A program made the translations under genes and the position numbers. Below are positions 30,701 to 40,050 of a stretch of DNA of 64,000 nt, in pieces; positions within the stretch are counted from its first letter, which is position 1, and every line of letters begins with the position of its first letter. The DNA is taken from contig JAHDYR010000016.1 of NCBI GenBank assembly GCA_019828565.1, forward strand, positions 211,053-275,052, read 5' to 3'. The DNA is from Carpediemonas membranifera BICM. Its lineage: Eukaryota; Protista; Fornicata. The notes under the pieces were generated by a model. That model was not told the origin of the DNA. It worked only from the letters and a program-made list of their open reading frames with translations, and searched no databases.

Positions 30701-33210
30701 GCCCCTGACGTCAACGACTCCCGCCGACTCCCCAGAGGAAGCTTTTTGAGGTTAGCGGTGAGGTCCTCAACATGGGCCTTTGTCTGCACGGTCGTCCTCC
30801 GCTGGTACTCCTCCATGAGAGCCTTGGCCGCCTCCTCAGCGTCCCAGACGTGCTTCGACATCGTCGCCTGCAGCTTGGTGGTCCTTACCAGCCGCGGCCC
30901 GTCGCCCTCTACCGCTGTACCCAGGACACCGTCGAAGTTGTCCAGAGAATGACCGCCGAACATCTGCCGGCGGCTCAGATCATCGCCCACACGACTGAGG
31001 AAGCTGGCGTCGAAGTGGGTCAACCCTACCGAAGCCTGCGGGCCGCGTGTGGTCTTACTGGCGAGGGCGCGGTACCTCTGGGCGGGTGTCATCGTCCGCT
31101 GGTACGTCAGGGCTTTGCCCGTGATCATGGGGCCCTTGGCCTTGTCCAGGGGCACGGAGGCGTTCTTACGGATCTTGAGACGCATCAACCTGTGTCGTAT
31201 GAGCTGGGAATACGATGAGTAGTTACCCAAGAACGCCTGCATCACCCTTCGCTGTCGGGCTGACTTGCGTGGTGAGGCTAGCTTCAGTATGCTCTCCCCA
31301 GTTCTTCTGGCCGTCTGGTCTGGGACAATGGCCTTTGACAGAGTTATAGGTGTCGCCAGGGCCGACTGTACCGGAGTCGTGGCGTGGTATCCGGCCCGGC
31401 CAGACGACCCCCGCGTGTCAGTGTCGATGTAGCCCGGGGGCTCTGTAGGGACGCCGGCGGGGGCTGTGTCTACCTCACTGAGGTCGAACGGGGTCGGGGC
31501 TGGCACCATGTGGACGTCCTCGTCCCATAGTTCGGCGTCCCCGGCCATTGCCACGCTCAGTCCGGGGTGTGACCCTGGCCTGGGCGATGGCTCGGCGCTG
31601 GGGGCCAGCTCCTCGTCAGAAACAGCTTCTGCAGTCTCCGTGCCTTGGATCGAGTCACCCAGATCCATGTCGTCCAGGGCCGGGGCGAGAGGTATATCGC
31701 GTGTCCAACTGTCCTCGGCCGCACGGTCGAGCACATCAGTTGATGGAATCCTATCGACGCTGCTCCAGGGCCCATGACCGGTCTGTGACTCCGACCTCGT
31801 GCGGTGCTCGGACCCGGCCAGACTTGCGGCCGAAGGAATGGAGGGCATCGGCGGCAGGGGGTCCCTCTGCCCCTGGCCGCCCTTGAGTCGGACGGTGAGG
31901 ATGTCCGCATGGTCGATTGCTAGCACCGCGTCCCGCTGCTTGCAGTAGTGGTGGACGAAAGCTCCGGCGGGGGACTGAGGGCGGTGGAGCGGGAGGGCGT
32001 CTGTGAGCTCTCGCTGGATGATTAGCTCGAGAGGGAGTTGCTTGATTTCAATAGTTCCTGACCCGACCGCTCCAGACGACTTTCGCCTGACACGTGACAC
32101 AGGAACTTCTGGAACATGCTTGAAAAGAGTGGTCGACTCTACCGGCACCTCTTCCTGTTGCTGAAGCAGGAAATCTGGCACAATAAGCGATGCGATAAAG
32201 AAGTTACCACTGTCTACACCACCAAACAAAATGGCAGTCCCCAGGTGAAGTATCTGTGTAGCAAACTCATTCAGACTCATCGACGGCACCAGGGCATCGG
32301 TCACCCCTGGTTCAAGCAAGAACACAGCCATCGAGCCCACTGCGACCATAACCCTGAATGGCTGGGCCTGAATGGCTGGGCAGAGGGTCAACCCGAGCAC
32401 TCGGCTGCGGGATACACGGCAGCAGAAAATGGGCCGGGCCACGGGAGGGGGATTCCTGTCATGGTCGGCCGCGAAAGCCCAGACCTCGACGTGACCGGTT
32501 CCGTATCCGACCACGACGAGAGGATCTGTCGCTGGATCGGGGGCCAAGTGCTGGGTGACCGCCGTGTGGACGATACTGGGGGTCCCGATCAGTGTGAATG
32601 CTGTGATGACACGCCACGAGATTAAGGAAAGGACTGTTGCGGTCGAACCGCTAACAGCAAATATTCGGTCACGGTGGGCGCCGAATAGTGCCAAATGGGC
32701 CACAGGCTGAGTTCCTACGCGTGCTAGGCCGATGGGCTCGAGCGAGTTCATGTCCCACATTCGAACGACGCCGTCAGAGCAACCGGCGATGATGACCGTG
32801 AGGGGGTATGTTGATGGGATCCGGCGCTGGGCATCCCTGGTCATGAGCTGGCCGCTCATGGCGTACTGTGTGTGCATATCTATGGTTAAGTCTGTTACTG
32901 CGAGGGATAGACACGCATAGGCGCCTGAAAGTGGCATTTGGTTTTGAATGATGCCTGAGAAGACATCACGGAAGACTATTTCGTTCTGTAGCGCGGAGAT
33001 CAGTAGTGATTTCTCTATATATACCGCTATGTTCGATCTTGATGCCCCATTGCTGCTGTATGACTTAGATTTGACGCAAGAGACGATGTCCACGACCTCG
33101 AAGGTGTTTCGAGTCTGAACGAGAATATAGCCCGCCGTCATATCGATAATATTGACTACTTGGCTGTCGAAAGACTGCTTGACGAAGGCGTTGGGCGGTA
33201 GTGAGGGCAT
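27790..33210 (-). CDS. Large hypothetical protein with N-terminal WD40-like repeats
   Basis: 1806-aa ORF with AGCSDGVVRMWD and VGYGTGHVEVW WD40-like motifs and a long disordered middle region. Confidence 0.75.
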   Translation of the reverse strand: MPSLPPNAFVKQSFDSQVVNIIDMTAGYILVQTRNTFEVVDIVSCVKSKSYSSNGASRSNIAVYIEKSLLISALQNEIVFRDVFSGIIQNQMPLSGAYACLSLAVTDLTIDMHTQYAMSGQLMTRDAQRRIPSTYPLTVIIAGCSDGVVRMWDMNSLEPIGLARVGTQPVAHLALFGAHRDRIFAVSGSTATVLSLISWRVITAFTLIGTPSIVHTAVTQHLAPDPATDPLVVVGYGTGHVEVWAFAADHDRNPPPVARPIFCCRVSRSRVLGLTLCPAIQAQPFRVMVAVGSMAVFLLEPGVTDALVPSMSLNEFATQILHLGTAILFGGVDSGNFFIASLIVPDFLLQQQEEVPVESTTLFKHVPEVPVSRVRRKSSGAVGSGTIEIKQLPLELIIQRELTDALPLHRPQSPAGAFVHHYCKQRDAVLAIDHADILTVRLKGGQGQRDPLPPMPSIPSAASLAGSEHRTRSESQTGHGPWSSVDRIPSTDVLDRAAEDSWTRDIPLAPALDDMDLGDSIQGTETAEAVSDEELAPSAEPSPRPGSHPGLSVAMAGDAELWDEDVHMVPAPTPFDLSEVDTAPAGVPTEPPGYIDTDTRGSSGRAGYHATTPVQSALATPITLSKAIVPDQTARRTGESILKLASPRKSARQRRVMQAFLGNYSSYSQLIRHRLMRLKIRKNASVPLDKAKGPMITGKALTYQRTMTPAQRYRALASKTTRGPQASVGLTHFDASFLSRVGDDLSRRQMFGGHSLDNFDGVLGTAVEGDGPRLVRTTKLQATMSKHVWDAEEAAKALMEEYQRRTTVQTKAHVEDLTANLKKLPLGSRRESLTSGATSPLGTARFGQIPTTARSERSGFVGMPSTVMKRRFSGSSQGRRRSIDHSVAHKAAHGATLSLGDDFKDADQDGRKGFSGFRTMNLMGKLNGLVATAQEQTGTAFPWLPSLPEEPAKARSARPPPTQRKSPTKPTSALAAKKAHQRQMSTGSASFSFDLPDLPSPATPTLTRAPSKPHLRQLHRSESRESAGNRPTTRSPRSGNGLMISTTMNVESEASETEQSPSVASEETETESYSSYTSDYSVSNEMSQMVLSVRDLTEAEQSRIWSAQDAIKSIHDLTGFVSESSDHDTETVGPEECGLSTDYDDPTLVSEHTRRSRSHTASAMTIPRQASAFDLTDGKTELSEMPESFHDLPVDLPPPPDEAISEVEAAILRDEFWRERYDNVALWISTVFGRYATYKCCDIDMLAVRGLAKEWHGASTAEPEFETSADVIDMFSVKPREVRRASMPDIRRTGKLTPEATPEYRKRWLAISGIIDDAEIQADPDAGFDPSAFTQYGMAEEEVEAVFTEARTDQLIAYFLHINAFKAHLGEEVTQDWMDLVEQMLAPAAEDTPPTLPKLSVDVRQMTPDQLLGSMLSLTSCSVGGAEDLEREWALTLRDTALSLVEDAAMGPSINVFGPAVALEDELRAVAASLDAYVDARDAALHARAAQLLYATLQAERERRLAEGQWPDETEPDTDPTNVAEALWAMPDDELEACIDALHRLSRTMTESAAMRLHDADAGPPRDIVSSWKPPRPPTPPPMPKPDPHMLYAAVLEELEPVMRRRRYAEEAIARANLAKRLQAAQETLPGMLSTVFGAGRGRLRHQINDAIGALTMGNFGQAVARLVGYDLGEIPDVPEPEPAQPEAQVRPASAVLATPGPESGAVEIDPDTVAVDYAASARYMRDAQVDPFKSHGVAPVEKISPRKRHVITEFGVFESQPLNVFRTPLGSGQTKLRDPVGLGSTLLDDDPIDEEYERKLRELLA

Positions 33211-33216
33211 CGATAA

Positions 33217-33318
33217 TGTGCAGGTTTAGGCACACGCTACTGTGCTATTGAAGCAGCACAGTACAGTGTGCTTTTGAAGGGTCAAACAATGTGTTTATTA
33301 TTATTATACTGCGCAACA
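33217..33318 (+). ncRNA. Orphan omegaRNA-like scaffold (copy 1)
   Basis: Ends AACAATGTGTTTA(TTATTATTA)TACTGCGCAACA, the same as 35440-35464 apart from a 9-nt TTA insertion. The 5' end TGTGCAGGTTTAGGCAC resembles 35388-35402 and pairs with the 3' end. Internal hairpin TACTGTGCT/AGCACAGTA. Confidence 0.5.
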
Positions 33319-33357
33319 CTGCCCTGTCTCCCTTCTACTCACGTCTTAAGTCGGTAG

Positions 33358-35384
33358 GGAGATCGTCTTCTCCAGGGCTTCCACAAAGCGTCTTCTTCGT
33401 GGACGTCAGCACAGCTGCAAACATCACAATCTCAAGCTCACACGTCGTCTCATTGTCTTCTATTCCACATTAAATTCACTTCTACACTTGTATATGCTGG
33501 TAATGGTGTTCATCGTCGGCTCTTATATGTCATCGGCAACAGGAGAGTGGGGGATTATGCCGCAGCAAAATATCTCTACTCATGCCTGCTGGCCCGGCTC
33601 GCGGTTGAATGCTATGCGCAGCGCCGGCAACTCCCCCTACATGACGCCGACTTCCACAAAGGACTGCTCACTCATCTACGCGGCGGTCATCCGGGTCAGG
33701 CCTACGCGGCCATCGTGCAGTCGCTCGACACTCTGCCGATGTGGCGGGAGACTACCACGCGGGATCTGGTCGCGCAGCTCGAAGGTCGTGCGGAGTCGCA
33801 TGGAGTGAGTCCCAGTCTCCGGAAGTGGTTCATCCGATACGCCAACTCTGTGAAGCTGTGGCTCGCTCGCACGGTGACGACGTACCGTGACAGGCTGCAG
33901 GGCACCCTCGCCCGACTCGAAGAAGCTCTCGCAGGTGTTGGCTCTCCGGCCTTCTTCCAGCAGGAGTTGGCCGGCGTTCACGCCATCCCCGACATGGTCA
34001 ACCCTGAGATCCTCGCGTGTCTCCCCTCGCTGTTCTGGGCGACTCACATGGGTGAGAACGACGGACTCCCAGTCTCCCAGGCTGCCCCACACATTCTCTC
34101 TTGCGTCTGGGCAATTGCTGACGGAGTGTAGACGTTGAGTGGCCTCATCAGCCACTTTAACGGGGAGTACTCGATGTCGCTCCGCCAGCCTCGCCTCGTT
34201 CCGATCATGCCCATGGCCCCCGTCCGACCGGGCTTCATGGCCTACGGTGACACGATGGGCCTACTGAATGATAATTTCTGTCATCGTGTGGGAATTAATC
34301 ACGCACACCCACACGCCACCCACCCCGTTGACAGAAGAGCAGGAGGAACCATACCAGAACAACCCCAGGTCAATGGGCCGTCTGCTCAGCCTGAGCACCG
34401 ATGGGGTCTGTGTGGCGGTGACTATTAAGAGAGGCTTCGGCCACTATCGGCCACAACATGATGCGAGCATGCCTGTTCGAAAGCGAGCGAAAGGGCGGGA
34501 GAAAGAGCGCCCCCGACTCGGGACCAATAATGCCGAGGCTCCGCCCGCGCCGGATCCTGATGCCCACCTCATGGGGTTCGACCCGGGCGCGAGGTCCATC
34601 GGAGGGTATTACATCAGGCACCCCGATGGCACCACCAGCTCCGGCGTCCTCCCAAAGTGCGGATACACTAAGACGCCAAGTTTCGGCTTTGATATGACGG
34701 CCGCGTCGTTCAAGAGCACAAGACTAGTGAGTTTCAACAACTCTATTTGGTTTGTGCTGGACAACGCGAACGACATTTTCGAGGCTGGAATGCGTAAGTC
34801 TTTCCGCCGAGTGCGCTTTGCGAACCACATCCTTCGCCAGAAGCACTTCGCCCGCTGCGGCCAACAGTTGGCTCGGGAGTTGCGGTCGCCACCATCCCAT
34901 CGCCACCCCCATTCGCCTGAAAGCCTTCAACGGGAGCTCGGGATTCACCACGCCTGCTGGTATGTTCATTCCTTGCGCGCCATATCGAAAGTTCGCGAGA
35001 GAGATAGTTCCCCTTCTCAAGAGGTATAACATTGTCGTCGATCTTAACATGGTTAACGAGGATCGCACCACCGTCGTCTGCCCTCACTGCCACGCCCCCT
35101 ACAAGCGAGTTCGTCCGCGTGATGACCAGCACGTTCACCCACATCGTGTGATGCTCTGCGAAAATCCACAGTGCCGTGGTGCTCAGTGGCGCGCAACAGT
35201 TCCTGATGCTCTGAATGTTGATCATCGGGACAAGAGTGCTGCAGAGAACATCCTGTGGCGTTCTCTTGCCACGGAAGATGAGCTCAGTGGCTCTCCGTTC
35301 AGTCGCACCTCGATCTCACGTCTTCAAACATCATTCCAGTATCATCAATTGGCTAACCGCCAACATTCGTCTACGGACGGATGA
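33358..35384 (+). pseudogene. Fanzor1-type RNA-guided nuclease, disrupted copy
   Basis: The assembled frames give VPIMPMAPVRPGFM, STDGVCVAV, RuvC-I GFDPG (D 34580), SFKST, RRVRFANH..RQK, RuvC-II VNEDRTT (E 35058), zinc finger CPHC/CENPQC, RuvC-III HRDKSAAENI (D 35229) and PFSR. There is an in-frame TAG at 34129-34131, two frameshifts (~34270-34330 and ~34890) and no clear ATG. Confidence 0.85.
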
Positions 35385-35464
35385 TGTTGTGCAGTTTGGC
35401 ACTTTGATCGTTCCTTCCAGGCCCTGTCTGGGACTTTCGAACAATGTGTTTATACTGCGCAACA
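35385..35464 (+). ncRNA. Putative Fanzor omegaRNA scaffold (copy 2), starting directly after the stop codon
   Basis: 80-nt nested hairpin rich in G-U pairs: TGTTGTGCAGT/ACTGCGCAACA, GGCAC/GTGTT, TTGaTCG/CGAaCAA, TCCAGGC/GTCTGGG. The position matches known Fanzor omegaRNAs. Confidence 0.65.
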
Positions 35465-35473
35465 GCTACTCGC

Positions 35474-35740
35474 TGCTCCGCTCCTGGGCCTCTATGCCGA
35501 TGCCAACGGCATCCCCTCTAATCCTGCTTGCAGGTAAAACCAATGGGGGGTAGAACATTTACTGGTCGTTTGAGGCTCAAACTGATCGAATGTTCGCCCG
35601 GTTCGGGTTCGGACCGGGCCATGCTGGTACGCACGAAGTAAACTCGTGTTTTCGAGCTTCTGTTCTCGTTCTCTATGCCGGCTGAACACTCAGGTAGACC
35701 TGTAGTGGTGCGACCGGAGCATAACCTGGTGTGCCAGGCC
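35474..35740. ncRNA. Candidate multi-hairpin structured RNA
   Basis: Stems at 35494-35512, 35553-35595, 35596-35619 and 35725-35738, plus a long-range pair TGCTCCG (35474)/CGGAGCA (35715). Confidence 0.4.
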
Positions 35741-35790
35741 TTCAGGTCAGACGACTGCCACGTTACTCTCAGCCACTGCAGCTACGGTAT

Positions 35791-36381
35791 TTACAGGAAG
35801 GGGTTGACGATCCGCTCGACCCCGTCCTCCCGGACAACCTTGATGACGAACTTGTCGAGGGGCTGGTTGATGATGTACCGCTCGGGGATCTCCTTCATGC
35901 AACCCTTGAGCACCTCGATCGCCTCTTCCTCGCCCATGTCAGCCTTCCAGTGCCTGTCGAAGTATGCCAGCGCGTAGTGGCCGAAGTAGCCATGGGCAGC
36001 AAAGTTCAGCTTGGACAGGGAGCCGAGGTAGTCCATCCAGTACAGTTGGGCCCCGGTCCCGTCCACACCGCCGAATAGTATGTTCACGTTGTACGGGTGC
36101 TTGCGGAGAGCCGTCGCCAGCTCGGAGCGGATGAAGTTGACGCTTGCATTAACTGAAAGCGGGCTCTCGTAGCTGATGTCGTACAAATTGAGGTTCTTTT
36201 GGATGTAAGAACCGAAGTGGTCTGTGTCTCCGGCCTCCCCTGTTATCGCCATGGCTCTGTTCTTGCCGAGGGGCATGATCTTATCACTATCGCTCTTAAG
36301 CATCGTGATGGAGTGAATAGACGACGCATCAGCCGCCAATACTACAAATCCATTTCCAGTAAGCCCTAGCAGAGAGTCCAT
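35791..36381 (-). CDS. PSMB2: 20S proteasome beta-4 subunit (PSMB2/PRE1)
   Basis: MDSLLGLTG..FVVLAAD, GEAGDT..F..YIQKN, LA.ALR..PY.VN, LYWMDYLG and AAHGY. Confidence 0.95.
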   Translation of the reverse strand: MDSLLGLTGNGFVVLAADASSIHSITMLKSDSDKIMPLGKNRAMAITGEAGDTDHFGSYIQKNLNLYDISYESPLSVNASVNFIRSELATALRKHPYNVNILFGGVDGTGAQLYWMDYLGSLSKLNFAAHGYFGHYALAYFDRHWKADMGEEEAIEVLKGCMKEIPERYIINQPLDKFVIKVVREDGVERIVNPFL

Positions 36382-36472
36382 AAGCGCTTATTTGTCGAGT
36401 TCTGCCACGGTTGTCAAATTGATGATGACCTTAAACTGCGACAACCGACCACCGCTGTTCTTGAGGTTGCAT

Positions 36473-37441
36473 TTACTCCGTCTGGGGTCCACCCCCGGCG
36501 GCCTGCGCGTCCATGCGCTCCTTGAGTGTCCGGCACAGCTTCTCCAGCGTCTCGTTCTTCTTCAGCAGCGCCTGCACCCCGCCCTCAACTTCCCGCTTCT
36601 CTTTGAGGATCTGGATAAGCTTCTCGCTCACCTCAATGTACTGCTTCTTGGCGTCAGTAAGCTCTGCGTTCAGCTTCGCGTTCGTTGAGTCAGCTCTCGA
36701 CAGCCGTTGCCTCATCTTATCGATGCCCTCATGCGACTCTCGCACCGCGTCTTTCACCCCCTCGAACTCCTTAACGTACTGCATCAGCTGGGCACGAGCC
36801 TCTTCCTCGCCCTTCACAGCGTCTGCTGCACGCTGGGCGTGTCTCTTGATCTCTGCGAACAGCTTCTCCCGGCCTGTCTCGGAGGCGTCGAGTTGCGTGG
36901 CGACGAGCTCGTGCTCTTTGTCGTATAGCTCCTTCTGCTTGGTGATCAAGCCGTCCTTCGCCTCAAGCTGCTCGAGAACCATCTTCAGGTTGGCTCTCAG
37001 CTTCTCATTCTCTTCCCGGAGTTCGGCGTCAACGGCAAACCGAGAGTCAACGTCATCCTTGAACTTGTCAAACGACTCAGTGAACTTCTGGATGGCGGCC
37101 TCTTTGGCCTTGATGATTCCATCACGCTCCTCAAGGATGGTCTTGTATGCCTCCTCGCGGCGGGTCGTCTCTTCACGCAGTTTGTCGTATGCTTCCATCA
37201 GCTTCTTGTTAAGCTCGAACGCCTCGAGGCTCTTCTTTTTCTCCTCAACAACAACAAGTTCGCCAATGCGCTTCTCCTCCGCCAGAGACTTCTGGGCCGC
37301 TTCCGCCTGCGCCTGATAGTGTTTGGCGTCAGCTTGCGACTTCAGGTGCTGCTTCTGCATATCTTGGTATAGCTTACGGAATTTGTCAGATGTAGCTCGC
37401 GCATCGGCCAAAGAGGCCTCCAGTTCAGCCTTGCTGGGCAT
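36473..37441 (-). CDS. Taxilin-family coiled-coil protein
   Basis: Long coiled coil with LREENEKL, QL..Y.KEF and the C-terminal LEKLCRTL motif typical of taxilins. Confidence 0.75.
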   Translation of the reverse strand: MPSKAELEASLADARATSDKFRKLYQDMQKQHLKSQADAKHYQAQAEAAQKSLAEEKRIGELVVVEEKKKSLEAFELNKKLMEAYDKLREETTRREEAYKTILEERDGIIKAKEAAIQKFTESFDKFKDDVDSRFAVDAELREENEKLRANLKMVLEQLEAKDGLITKQKELYDKEHELVATQLDASETGREKLFAEIKRHAQRAADAVKGEEEARAQLMQYVKEFEGVKDAVRESHEGIDKMRQRLSRADSTNAKLNAELTDAKKQYIEVSEKLIQILKEKREVEGGVQALLKKNETLEKLCRTLKERMDAQAAGGGPQTE

Positions 37442-37744
37442 CGCAAATTTCGTTCGTGCAGTTTATGCTGAAGACAATGTGGCATTTAGAGGTTTATGTG
37501 GAGGATTCATGTAAAGGTGACTTAGGCTGTCGACCCCTTGGGATGAACTCCAGAGGACTGAACAGGTTCAGTCTGACGGCCCACCTGTCGTACACCAGAA
37601 AGGTAGCGGACATGAGGGCGTCGGCGATGGTAAGAGCGACGGTTCTGGGCGGGATTTTTAGACTCAAGTATTCTTATCCTGCGTGGCACACTACCTCCAC
37701 TCACCCACTTCAGCCCTCGTCGTACCATCGGGCTTTCGTGCTTT

Positions 37745-37910
37745 CAGTCGTCGGTCTGCACGAAAAGATGCGTCGTCTGTCGTCCATCGTCTGTGTCGAA
37801 CGCTGCTGTCTTCTTTCGCATCTGTGCTCGTCTGTTACGCGCTCATCTGTCGTCCATTGCCGGCGTCTGAAGCTCATGTCGTCGTCGTCGTCGTCATCTT
37901 CGTCTGTTGT
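37745..37910 (+). repeat. Low-complexity CRTCTG/GTC repeat tract
   Basis: About seven C(G/A)TCTG(T) motifs plus a (GTC)6 run, upstream of the second Fanzor. Confidence 0.5.
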
Positions 37911-38025
37911 GAGAGACACTAGTGGTGGAAAGCGGTTGTAGCTAGTAGTAAAGACGCTTTGTGTTGTATGCTGCTGGTTTCTTGTGTTTTGAGGGATGCT
38001 GCTAGCTGATGAACCCTGAAAAGAA

Positions 38026-38985
38026 ATGATCGATGCAGTGCTCTCTGTGAAGACAGACGGGGTCTCTGTTGCTGTGACGGTTTGGGTGGGTCGCGAGAAA
38101 TACCGTGGCGGTCGGGTGGCTGACCGGCCCACGTACAAAAAGGGTAGCAGCAACAAGCGGGCTCAGCTCGGTCAGGATGACGCCGAGGCTACTCCTGCCC
38201 CGGACAGTCGGACTGCTCTCATGGACTTCGACCCTGGTGCTCGGTCACTGGGCGGCTACACGATCCGCCGCCCAGACGGGCAGAGTGTATCTGGCGTACT
38301 CGCTAAGTGTGGCTACACTGCCACCCCCTCTTTCCGCGTGAATATGAGCGCAGCATCGTTCAAAACGACAAGTCTAGAGGCTCTCAAACAGTCGATTAGG
38401 TTTGTCCATGAGAACATCGTTCAGATCATCAACGAGGGGACGAGAAAGTGTTTCCGCCGTGCGACTTTTGCCAATCACCGTCTGCGCCTGAAGCACTTCG
38501 CCCGGGCTGGACGTCAACTCCTGGATGATCTCGGCGGGCGCCCCCCGGAGCCCATTCACCTCAAAGTCGCGTATGGGGCTGCACTGTTCGGTTCCGCCGG
38601 CACTCCGTCCTGTGCTCCGTACCGCCACTTTGCTCGAGCTCTCCCTGGCATCATGCTCCGGCACAACGTCGTCGTGAGTGTCACGATGGTCTCGGAATTC
38701 CGCACTTCCATCGTGTGCCCATACTGCAAAGCACACTTCAGACGTGTGGTGCACACACGCCGCACCATGCTCTGCCAGAATCCCGCGTGCGAGGGAGCTC
38801 CATGGCGCGTTGAACGGCTTCGTCGGCATCCCGAGCAGAGAGACACACTTCTCAATCTCTCTCACCGAGATAAGAGCGCCAGCGAGAACATCCTTTGGTG
38901 CACCTTCGATGCAACTTCAGATCAGATAGAGCAATCTCCTTTCCACTACGACTCCCAGAGAGGTGCTCTTCCTCGCTATCATTAA
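38026..38985 (+). CDS. Fanzor1-type nuclease, intact but N-terminally truncated (319 aa)
   Basis: KTDGVSVAV, RuvC-I DFDPG (D 38230), SFKTT, RRATFANH, VAYG...CAPYR, RuvC-II VSEFRTS (E 38695), CPYC/CQNPAC and RuvC-III HRDKSASENI (D 38869). Collinear with the disrupted copy. Confidence 0.88.
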   Translation: MIDAVLSVKTDGVSVAVTVWVGREKYRGGRVADRPTYKKGSSNKRAQLGQDDAEATPAPDSRTALMDFDPGARSLGGYTIRRPDGQSVSGVLAKCGYTATPSFRVNMSAASFKTTSLEALKQSIRFVHENIVQIINEGTRKCFRRATFANHRLRLKHFARAGRQLLDDLGGRPPEPIHLKVAYGAALFGSAGTPSCAPYRHFARALPGIMLRHNVVVSVTMVSEFRTSIVCPYCKAHFRRVVHTRRTMLCQNPACEGAPWRVERLRRHPEQRDTLLNLSHRDKSASENILWCTFDATSDQIEQSPFHYDSQRGALPRYH

Positions 38986-39026
38986 CTTGCTAAGTTGAGC
39001 AAACACGCGCTGCAGCGCGCGTGATA

Positions 39027-39127
39027 TGCAGCGCACGATTGATAGAGTATGATGAACCACACTGCGATCCTGATGCTGCTTGGATCACTGTGTGTTTTGG
39101 ACTCAACAATTCTAATCCTGCGCAGCA
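39027..39127 (+). ncRNA. Putative Fanzor omegaRNA scaffold (copy 3)
   Basis: Outer stem TGCAGCGCACGATT/AATCCTGCGCAGCA (12 of 14 paired) with inner stems GAGT/ACTC, CACAC/GTGTG and GATCC/GGATC. Ends AACAAT...CTGCGCAGCA like the other two copies and starts about 40 nt after the stop. Confidence 0.55.
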
Positions 39128-39276
39128 CAGACAAGAATGCCCTGGCATGTATACTCTCTTTGACGACCTATCGACGGCCTATACATCGTTACACAGCCAT
39201 GTAGTTCGCTTCCGCGACTCCCACGCTTCGTTGAATGCCCCGCACACTGCAGCCAAATCACATCATTTATCTCAAA

Positions 39277-40050
39277 TTACATCGCCATGCTTCCCAGCTG
39301 GGTCGCTACGTGGTCGTGGGCAATCTTGGGCCAATCTATGGTCTGCCGGGTGATGGGGAGGGCGCGGCGGAGGGCCTTGAACTGGTTCTCGTTGATGTCC
39401 GTCAGGGCCGAGCCGACGGTGCTGATCGACGTCTCCTCGAAGCGGCGGATGGCCCGGACGACCTCAGTGGGGGTGGGGGCGGGGGTCTCAGGCATGGTCT
39501 TGTCAACCTCGCCCTGGACGTTGCCGCCCTCGTAAAAGTGGATTACACCGACCATTGAGCCAGACACGGCGCCATTCGCAACGATGTAGACGTTACGGAG
39601 GGAGCCGGTGTAGAAGTTCTTGGCTGAGATCTTGTCGGACGAGACGACGATCACCTTCTTGTCCTCGAGGTTGTACACGGCTACAGCGGCGGCGGGATAG
39701 CTCTCCTTCGCCATCTTGTACACCTCATCAGCGAGCTCGACGTACTCGGCGTCGTCATCCTCCTCGAGGGGGCGCGCATCGGTAACCTTGTGGGACATGT
39801 GGTCAACCTTGACGATAAGCCCTTCACGAGGGCAGATGTACTCGTTCTCACCTACAGAAGCATACTCGGAAATTACCACTTGCTTGTCCTCATGGGCAAA
39901 GGCAACACAGTGCTTCTCGTTGTACTCCTTGCAAATTTCTGGAAGAACGCTGCTAATCTCAGACCCAGCAAGCTGGCGGATGTCCTTCACAACAGATTCT
40001 ACCTCCGTGGGAGGAGCAAGCATGATCAAAGTCCTGGCACGCTGTTCCAT
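39277..40050 (-). CDS. CAPZA: F-actin capping protein alpha subunit
   Basis: APPTEVESVVKDIR, KNFYTGSLR, IHFYEGGNVQ and FKALRRALPITRQTIDW. Confidence 0.93.
   Translation of the reverse strand: MEQRARTLIMLAPPTEVESVVKDIRQLAGSEISSVLPEICKEYNEKHCVAFAHEDKQVVISEYASVGENEYICPREGLIVKVDHMSHKVTDARPLEEDDDAEYVELADEVYKMAKESYPAAAVAVYNLEDKKVIVVSSDKISAKNFYTGSLRNVYIVANGAVSGSMVGVIHFYEGGNVQGEVDKTMPETPAPTPTEVVRAIRRFEETSISTVGSALTDINENQFKALRRALPITRQTIDWPKIAHDHVATQLGSMAM

Follow-up and report, generated by a model that had tools for sequence, protein, structure and literature searches.

What kind of genetic element do the two related coding remnants on the plus strand represent, which lie between 33.2 and 39.2 kb of a 64-kb window of the Carpediemonas membranifera genome, and how did they come to stand there with two minus-strand host genes between them? 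The window, meaning the whole stretch of DNA that was analysed, corresponds to positions 211053-275052 of contig 17 in an assembly of 24.2 Mb and 69 contigs; its owner is indeed a metamonad, as had been guessed from the sequence. Fanzors are eukaryotic RNA-guided nucleases, and the original prediction saw in this region a Fanzor system operating with several guides within 6 kb. The present analysis leads to a different organization. The region most probably contains two insertions, named A and B, which arose independently and are now defective; they belong to a DNA transposon family that is dispersed in the genome and has a Fanzor1-type nuclease as its sole gene. The members of this family are bounded by TGTG...ACA ends and by 5-bp target-site duplications (TSDs), and they are inserted in a single orientation, 14 nt (A) or 13 nt (B) past a GCAGTTT motif.

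On the basis of sequence comparisons, the family protein is assigned to the Fanzor1 type of RuvC nucleases (TnpB family), of which it is a highly divergent member. The coding remnants of A and B (loci 1 and 2) are collinear paralogs, with 55% identity over 171 aa and 44% over 170 aa in two successive halves, and both display the motifs reported at the outset: TDGV, FDPGAR (RuvC-I), E-x-R-T (RuvC-II), CxxC...CxxxxC and HRDKSAxENI (RuvC-III). Longer open frames exist elsewhere in the genome: 642 aa with an ATG start for B (L007, contig 18), 674 codons devoid of an early ATG for A (L061), and 600 aa with a shortened C-terminus for a third, C type (L062). In the intact 642-aa B protein, the catalytic residues D392, E547 and D605 fall, when aligned with Fanzor1 proteins from outside Carpediemonas and with SpuFz1, in the columns DPG, E-F-x-T-S and RD..A..NI of these proteins. 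Between RuvC-II and RuvC-III stands a zinc finger (C554/C557/C573/C578) whose CxxC...CxxxxC pattern is invariant in the alignment (A3). The D-E-D triad is complete in locus 2 (codons 38230-32, 38695-97 and 38869-71) and also in locus 1, where its members fall in different reading frames.

The relationship to known Fanzors was established through profiles. All database homologues at E<1e-10 are C. membranifera 'hypothetical proteins', and the window open reading frame (ORF) gives with Pfam PF07282 a sub-threshold Cas12f1-like TNB match (E 0.008, 16.7 bits for a cut-off of 26.3). An exhaustive profile search of 1.8 billion representatives retrieved, in addition to Carpediemonas fragments, four outside proteins (E 2e-6 to 5e-4), three of which reach the Pfam TNB cut-off, P0036 remaining below it. 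Further relatives of one of these proteins were collected. An outside-only profile (A4) was compared with a Carpediemonas-only profile (A5), a design chosen against circularity. The two profiles match in hhalign with a probability of 98.7% (E 2e-16, 328 columns), from the PxLVPxVPMAPVRPGFM block to RuvC-III, a match that covers residues 262-618 only. Against the PDB, profile A4 finds SpuFz1 over its whole length (E 1e-63), PpFz (4e-53) and GtFz (8e-46), the next match after these Fanzor1 structures being LaTranC (2e-4). Predicted structures point in the same direction. The AlphaFold2 model of the full-length protein, built from an 8-row alignment, is unusable; in that of the C-terminal part, the predicted local distance difference test (pLDDT) reaches 70-89 in the RuvC core, and Foldseek places SpuFz on top, followed only by Cas12f/p, PpFz, Fanzor2 and TnpB, with template-modelling (TM) scores of just 0.2-0.3. 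In the ESM Atlas, where both sides of the comparison are predicted structures, the full-length protein resembles giant-virus PF07282+PF26935 clusters over residues 9-635 (feature score 0.98, TM 0.59-0.64), while TnpB clusters score about 0.4. The divergent Fanzor1 lineage first suggested by motifs is thereby borne out. P0067, the one non-Carpediemonas match of a word-based search, was set aside as merely another distant TNB protein.

The family is large. The locus-2 protein has at least 129 matches in the genome, which form one group of 94-96% identity (subfamily B) and another of about 53% (subfamily A and the related C type), and the family numbers 130-plus copies. The motif AACAAT..CTGCGCARCA, noticed initially at the close of three hairpins, does occur exactly three times in the window, always on the plus strand (33285, 35440 and 39105), where none is expected; genome-wide, 263 copies are found and none for the reversed control. 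It exists in two versions, one accompanying A and C, the other B. Element boundaries were set by multi-copy BLAST on loci that are a subset of the family. Full-length elements measure 2.2-2.6 kb and have the Fanzor1-type nuclease as their only gene; many internal-deletion derivatives with differing junctions accompany them, down to solo units of 43 nt flanked by a TSD. The elements start with TGTG (A, TGTGCTATTGAAGGG; B, TGTGGTATTTAGAGG) and finish in ACA (A, ..CTGCGCAACA; B, ..CTGCGCAGCACA). The final 30-43 nt of the right end recur, in direct orientation, at the close of the left end, for which reason the motif also appears 'upstream' of locus 1. Among the sampled loci, a perfect 5-bp TSD, each time a different 5-mer, flanks 13 of the 16 pairs of left and right ends, and the same holds for 3 of the 5 solo units. 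The distance from the stop codon to the terminus of the right end is likewise fixed, at 79-80 nt in 13 of 14 A-type ORF ends and at about 144 nt in 20 of 24 B-type ones (33/38 overall).

In all sampled loci, GCAGTTT or a one-mismatch variant precedes the left end on the same strand as the ORF. The pattern GCAGTTT-N12-15-TGTG has 148 matches genome-wide for 31 in the control, and the first 100 of the 148, tallied by hand, include 31 A and 20 B left ends. The spacing is 14 nt for 26 of these A ends (15 nt for three, 13 and 12 nt for one each) and 13 nt for 19 of the B ends (12 nt for the remaining one). Moreover, B favours GCAGTTTATG, present at 9/18 independent B sites against 2/31 A sites. Since both the offset and the motif preference differ by subfamily, the specificity seems to be encoded by the elements themselves. 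Certain motifs have received several insertions, from A as well as from B, with duplication of the same 5-mer (L026/L051, L017), as would be expected of a mechanism that is anchored to the motif and acts like a ruler. Among the matches listed, the motif with the 13/14-nt signature is carried by no other repeat family; a third family at the same target was considered and dropped, as it consisted only of 8 unrelated TGTGCG sites. At 14 of 20 insertion sites, both window sites included, a divergent host ORF starts 3-148 nt from the motif. Insertion is therefore site- and orientation-specific and usually head-to-head with the host gene beyond the shared motif, from which the ATG of that gene is removed by a few tens of bases at most. 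This arrangement accounts for the elements being antisense to all their neighbours, and it suggests that insertions parting a gene from its promoter are removed by selection.

Both copies of the window (Table 1) conform to this scheme, and both are dead: neither is able to produce a functional nuclease. The initial view of two protein-coding loci has to be corrected. Locus 1 no longer holds an open gene. It is split over three frames (33547-34131, 34268-35029 and 34752-35384) and has suffered a 101-nt N-terminal deletion at 33534/33538, an in-frame TAG at 34129-34131 where other copies read G, and one-base frame changes near 34321 and near 34882. Locus 2 is open and belongs to a deletion derivative: element B lacks reference positions 526-1502 of L007 (L007 reverse strand), i.e. 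977 bp, with a junction at about 38037/38038, and because these 977 bp encoded the N-terminal half of the protein, only the RuvC half is retained. The three hairpins, described originally as related omegaRNA-like scaffolds each followed by unrelated sequence, had also to be reinterpreted. The second and the third are right ends of elements, the position expected of an omegaRNA scaffold. The first consists of the A left end paired with the adjoining host motif (z -3.3 versus shuffles), and the sequence that follows it (CTGCCCTGTCTCC...) is element interior, conserved in every A copy. This left end (33241-33318) bears a private 26-nt duplication of its first bases, which gives 'hairpin 1' its extra inner palindrome, and its end motif contains additional TTA repeats. 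The B left end, a fourth terminal unit with a variant motif, had escaped notice. As for the right ends, the A hairpin, whose outermost pairs take in the last base of the element, is markedly more stable than shuffled sequences (z -5.0), and the B right end gives a z of -2.3. Rfam recognizes no family over 33000-39400.

Table 1. Features of the two insertions and of the adjoining host genes, in window positions.
Feature	Position	Strand	Remarks
Divergent host ORF, ATG	33210	-	9 nt from motif 33220..33226
Host target motif GCAGGTT (variant of GCAGTTT)	33220..33226	+	14 nt upstream of A left end
TSD GCTAC, left copy	33236..33240		element A
Element A	33241..35464	+	2224 bp; defective A-subfamily copy, ~96.5% identical to full-length L061 copy
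A left-end unit	33241..33318	+	start TGTGCTATTG; end, copy of right-end terminus AACAAT..CTGCGCAACA
Decayed Fanzor1-like coding region of A	33403..35384	+
RuvC-I FDPGAR (A)	34577
RuvC-II NEDRTT (A)	35055
Zinc finger CPHC (A)	35079
RuvC-III HRDKS (A)	35223
A right end	35385..35464	+	80-nt near-perfect hairpin straight after stop; terminus CTGCGCAACA
TSD GCTAC, right copy	35465..35469		element A
Proteasome beta-type subunit gene	35791-36381	-	host gene between loci 1 and 2
GCAGTTTA(A/T)G motif	36429-36439	-	before proteasome gene
Taxilin-like coiled-coil protein gene	36473-37441	-	host gene between loci 1 and 2; ATG 37441
Host target motif GCAGTTT (context GCAGTTTATG)	37458..37464	+	13 nt upstream of B left end; 16 nt from ATG (37441) of divergent taxilin-like gene
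TSD GACAA, left copy	37473..37477		element B
Element B	37478..39129	+	1652 bp; internal-deletion derivative of 2564-bp B-subfamily element
B left-end unit	37478..37690	+	start TGTGGCATTTAGAGG; end, variant copy of right-end terminus ..TCCTGCGTGGCACA
Locus-2 ORF, open	38026..38985	+	319 aa; C-terminal WED/RuvC/zinc-finger part only
B right end	38986..39129	+	two small stem-loops and terminal long hairpin 39027-39127; terminus CTGCGCAGCACA
TSD GACAA, right copy	39130..39134		element B

The nature of the target motif deserves attention. It is 14- to 100-fold enriched in the genome, with 1293 occurrences of TGCAGTTTA for 91 in the control and 298 of GCAGTTTAAGG for 3. Of the ten free motif sites in the window, seven are followed, 16-115 nt downstream, by an ORF of 120 aa or more on the same strand. 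Transcripts were consulted as assembled contigs from three small runs of uncertain library type. These contigs behave like cDNA: genes are covered, part of the intergenic DNA is skipped, and a non-genomic adapter is carried. A spliced leader was considered as the source of the extra letters at the cDNA ends; the 18-mer is absent from the genome and was treated as a library adapter. The contig of the proteasome gene ends at 36420, where the adapter follows; GCAGTTT is 13 nt upstream of this point and the ATG 39 nt downstream. On the grounds of its enrichment, its position upstream of ORFs and this tagged end, GCAGTTTA(A/T)G is read as a candidate host core-promoter element, with a transcription start about 13 nt downstream. 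The cDNA-like contigs of the three runs also cover both elements with a high summed depth; as these are assembled sequences, strand and RNA ends are not readable. Adapter-tagged ends occur inside right ends at 39103 (bottom strand) and in another A copy. It may also be mentioned that antisense transcripts may start at the promoter-like reverse complement of the CTGCGCARCA terminus.

From these elements a life cycle can be sketched. The element would land about the transcription start and be transcribed from the captured promoter, presumably leaving the neighbouring gene connected to its own. By analogy with TnpB and other Fanzors, the right end that follows the stop codon would act as an omegaRNA scaffold, and the guide would be read from the flank past CTGCGCARCA, beginning with the TSD. 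The nuclease of an intact copy might then cut unoccupied or vacated sites and in this way help the family to persist. In other Fanzor1 elements, the scaffold takes in the terminal inverted repeat and the TSD, and about 15 nt of guide follow beyond it (Yoon et al. 2023, PMC10711439). The right ends of A and B are accordingly best described as candidate omegaRNA scaffolds and/or transposition ends, with a slight leaning, based on this analogy, towards an omegaRNA role for the structured sequence after the stop codon. A built-in fixed guide, i.e. a copy of the target motif inside full-length A or B, was envisaged and found unsupported: look-alikes occur at the start of the A left end (3 mismatches) and in the 5' arm of the A right end (4 mismatches), and none in B.

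Several observations weigh against parts of this interpretation. Regarding the protein, neither the single 642-aa sequence searched against PDB and Pfam nor a three-sequence Carpediemonas-only profile (A2) searched against PDB returned a significant match, so that the sequence support for the Fanzor identity is indirect (transitive), and the AlphaFold2 models are of low to moderate confidence, with a pLDDT of 45 for the full-length protein and 57.5 for the C-terminal part. The frameshifts of copy A hinge on the accuracy of the assembly. Regarding the RNA, contigs devoid of readable ends and strand give no direct support for an omegaRNA; the two tagged ends within right ends do not reach the element end, from which they are 20-26 nt away, and they agree better with antisense (bottom-strand) starts. 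Since there are only two types of right end and CTGCGCAG is palindromic, covariation is not assessable. No fixed transposon-adjacent motif (TAM) is evident beside the presumed protospacer, the bases just 5' of the TSD being variable. Finally, the promoter role of the target motif is deduced from positions in one 64-kb window and from a single tagged cDNA end.

How such elements move is the other half of the question. In agreement with the original prediction, no transposase is present inside the element, and the B protein offers no room for an additional transposase domain. Y1 (PF01797) and serine recombinase (PF00239) searches found nothing in the genome. Its five Helitron Rep loci have no end motif within the ~3 kb examined at each, and the Rep locus of contig 1 is far from every listed end-motif position there. 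The rve integrase has at least 150 genome matches (e.g. L067-L072), derived from long terminal repeat (LTR) elements with open frames up to ~1550 aa; none of these genes is inside an element of the family, and none was linked to its ends or target. TG..CA ends combined with a 5-bp TSD are a hallmark of retroviral-type (rve) LTR elements, and they also fit Tn7/Mu-type enzymes. The terminal hairpins and AACAAT..CTGCGCARCA could consequently be mainly transposition signals for a transposase or integrase acting in trans, the rve integrase of the many LTR elements being the candidate, and the Fanzor gene would be cargo. Such a mechanism would explain the form of the ends and their TSDs, the resemblance of the solo units to solo LTRs, and the presence of the same terminal 30-43 nt at both ends, as the left copy is inexplicable by an omegaRNA role; the abundance of rve genes would provide the enzyme. 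The elements with these ends nevertheless carry the Fanzor gene only, the longest motif pairs seen spanning 2.2-2.6 kb, and the motif with its 13/14-nt target signature is found in no other family among the matches listed. In addition, A and B differ in offset and motif variant, which suggests that the elements encode their own specificity. Their terminal repeats are direct and not inverted, and neither a primer-binding site nor a polypurine tract is evident. Mobilization in trans is thus possible without being favoured, and it is compatible with an omegaRNA role of the right end. The converse proposal dispenses with a transposase: the Fanzor ribonucleoprotein, or the ends, would read GCAGTTT, a 5-nt staggered cut would be made ~16-21 nt downstream of the start of the motif, and the element would be inserted there. 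SpuFz1 cuts after bases 16-17 of the non-target strand and 20-21 of the target strand, leaving 5' overhangs (PMC10432273); if the bases are numbered from the start of GCAGTTT, a cut of this type would enclose exactly the duplicated 5-mer, and it is from this agreement that insertion driven by the nuclease itself is contemplated. This proposal is held to be improbable.

A different function of the termini has also to be weighed, in which they would mimic promoters. The bottom strand of the terminus (GCGCAGTATAAAC in A, GCGCAGGATTAGA in B) resembles the host GCAGTTTA motif, and the right end could drive antisense transcription and the left end transcription directed outward, so that the adjacent host gene would be expressed again. 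GCAGGAT is present on the bottom strand and the tagged cDNA end at 39103 is 12 nt downstream of it, which matches the 13-nt spacing of the proteasome gene; moreover, a contig of 611 nt leads outward from the B left end into a flank. This is one tagged end, however, and the second, in an A-type right end, misfits the spacing; the adapter orientation is deduced and not documented, and the similarity of the sequences amounts to 9 of 13 bases at best. Promoter mimicry is therefore considered rather unlikely. Much more trivially, the loci might have been due to contamination by a bacterial TnpB/IS605 element or to chance motifs in non-coding DNA, an idea to which the weak Pfam result (merely a sub-threshold Cas12f1-like TNB match) could have given some credit. 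It is refuted by the position of both loci on a contig of 275 kb, with eukaryotic genes (proteasome subunit, taxilin) to either side, by the existence of more than 129 copies with TSDs, by closest relatives that are eukaryotic and viral Fanzor1 proteins and not TnpB, and by the absence of Y1 and serine recombinases from the genome. The insertion of two defective members of a dispersed Fanzor1 transposon family is hence retained as the best explanation of the region.

Among known systems, the closest likeness is with the Fanzor-only elements of Spizellomyces punctatus (SpuFz1, Spu-1; Bao & Jurka 2013, PMC3627910; Saito et al. 2023, PMC10432273), which also measure ~2.1-2.6 kb and contain one ORF of ~640 aa. 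As in Spu-1, no transposase is found anywhere with the same ends, many ORF-less 'ghost' copies exist, and a structured non-coding right end lies directly 3' of the ORF. The Carpediemonas protein is collinear with SpuFz1 from the TDGV motif to RuvC-III; with ~15-20% identity, however, it is invisible to Pfam or to a single-sequence search. The terminal repeats are direct here and are 33-bp inverted repeats in Spu-1, the TSD is 5 bp instead of TA, and the strict, oriented insertion 13-14 nt downstream of GCAGTTT and the metamonad host are particular to the present family. The TnpB/omegaRNA systems of IS200/IS605 and IS607 share the RuvC D-E-D triad with a zinc finger, and the scaffold is likewise expected at the 3' end of the gene and the right end, with the guide in the flank. 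They differ from the Carpediemonas elements, which have TSDs but no TnpA (neither Y1 nor serine recombinase exists in the genome) and whose protein seems to possess, unlike TnpB, a long N-terminal half of the Fanzor1 type. Helitron2-borne Fanzor1 elements of Chlamydomonas (CRe-1/2/3; PMC3627910) are comparable by being non-autonomous and by having terminal hairpins and TSDs. Their TSDs are of 7-19 bp, their target is TTTT and 5' truncation is common (PMC3627910), whereas the present family has a TSD fixed at 5 bp and a target made up of GCAGTTT plus 13/14 nt, and no Rep locus is near the listed end motifs of the same contig. Finally, integration by Tn7 and CRISPR-associated transposons (CAST) or by Ty3-type elements also combines TGT...ACA ends, a 5-bp TSD and a single orientation at a fixed distance from a recognised sequence, with insertion, presumed for the present family, at or near the transcription start that leaves genes undisrupted. 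The present elements contain neither TnsABC/TniQ nor an integrase, the distance is much shorter (13-14 nt), and the RuvC triad, dead in Cas12k, is intact.

This family places Fanzor1 in the Metamonada, in a lineage too divergent for standard annotation; no paper associating Fanzor or TnpB with Carpediemonas or metamonads was found, the text of the main surveys, supplementary tables aside, being silent on the subject. The TGTG...ACA ends, the 5-bp TSDs, the deletion derivatives and solo ends, and the oriented insertion near GCAGTTT are new. The benefit that transposons derive from Fanzor, as well as the movement of Fanzor-only elements, are considered open questions (Saito et al. 2023, PMC10432273), and the insertion signature described here is very clean in this respect: single-base precision, fixed orientation, a 5-bp duplication and subfamily-specific offsets, with no transposase as a partner. 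Were this specificity set by the nuclease or by its RNA, the family would offer a model, taken from nature, of how a compact protein of the TnpB family could achieve programmable or site-specific integration. Should its own nuclease drive insertion, this would amount to a natural promoter-targeted integration with a subfamily-specific offset (13 versus 14 nt) and motif preference. Were an integrase of the host or of a retroelement responsible instead, it would be a new case of promoter-tethered 'safe-haven' targeting in a gene-dense protist genome. The candidate Carpediemonas core promoter element GCAGTTTA(A/T)G is a by-product of this work.

Some additional observations were made in the course of the analysis. 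A C. membranifera protein publicly named 'cytosine deaminase' (P0041) shares 97% identity with the B Fanzor protein across 83% of its length, and Pfam shows no deaminase domain in it, for which reasons this name looks wrong. The nearest outside relative, P0035 (646 aa, PF26935+PF07282), is encoded on a 58-kb contig of a forest-soil metagenome (L065); this contig is gene-dense, with GIY-YIG and H-lectin genes, and comes probably from a giant virus. In the window, a degenerate B-type terminus (TCTAATCCTGC..GCAGG) at 35514-35533, 50 nt downstream of the A right end, may be what remains of an earlier solo unit at this site. On contig 2 of the C. membranifera assembly (G000), a tandem array of at least nine units with a period of ~1162 bp extends over ~158.4-167.8 kb; each unit has GCAGTTTAGC..., then TGTGGCGGTAGGG 14 nt on, and the array may represent a small gene in tandem repeats that is under the control of the same motif. 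Contig 1 contains four GCAGTTTAAGG motifs spaced by ~3.94 kb between 899.7 and 911.6 kb, three of them ~1.05 kb downstream of an rve match; LTR retroelements thus seem to carry the same promoter-like motif.

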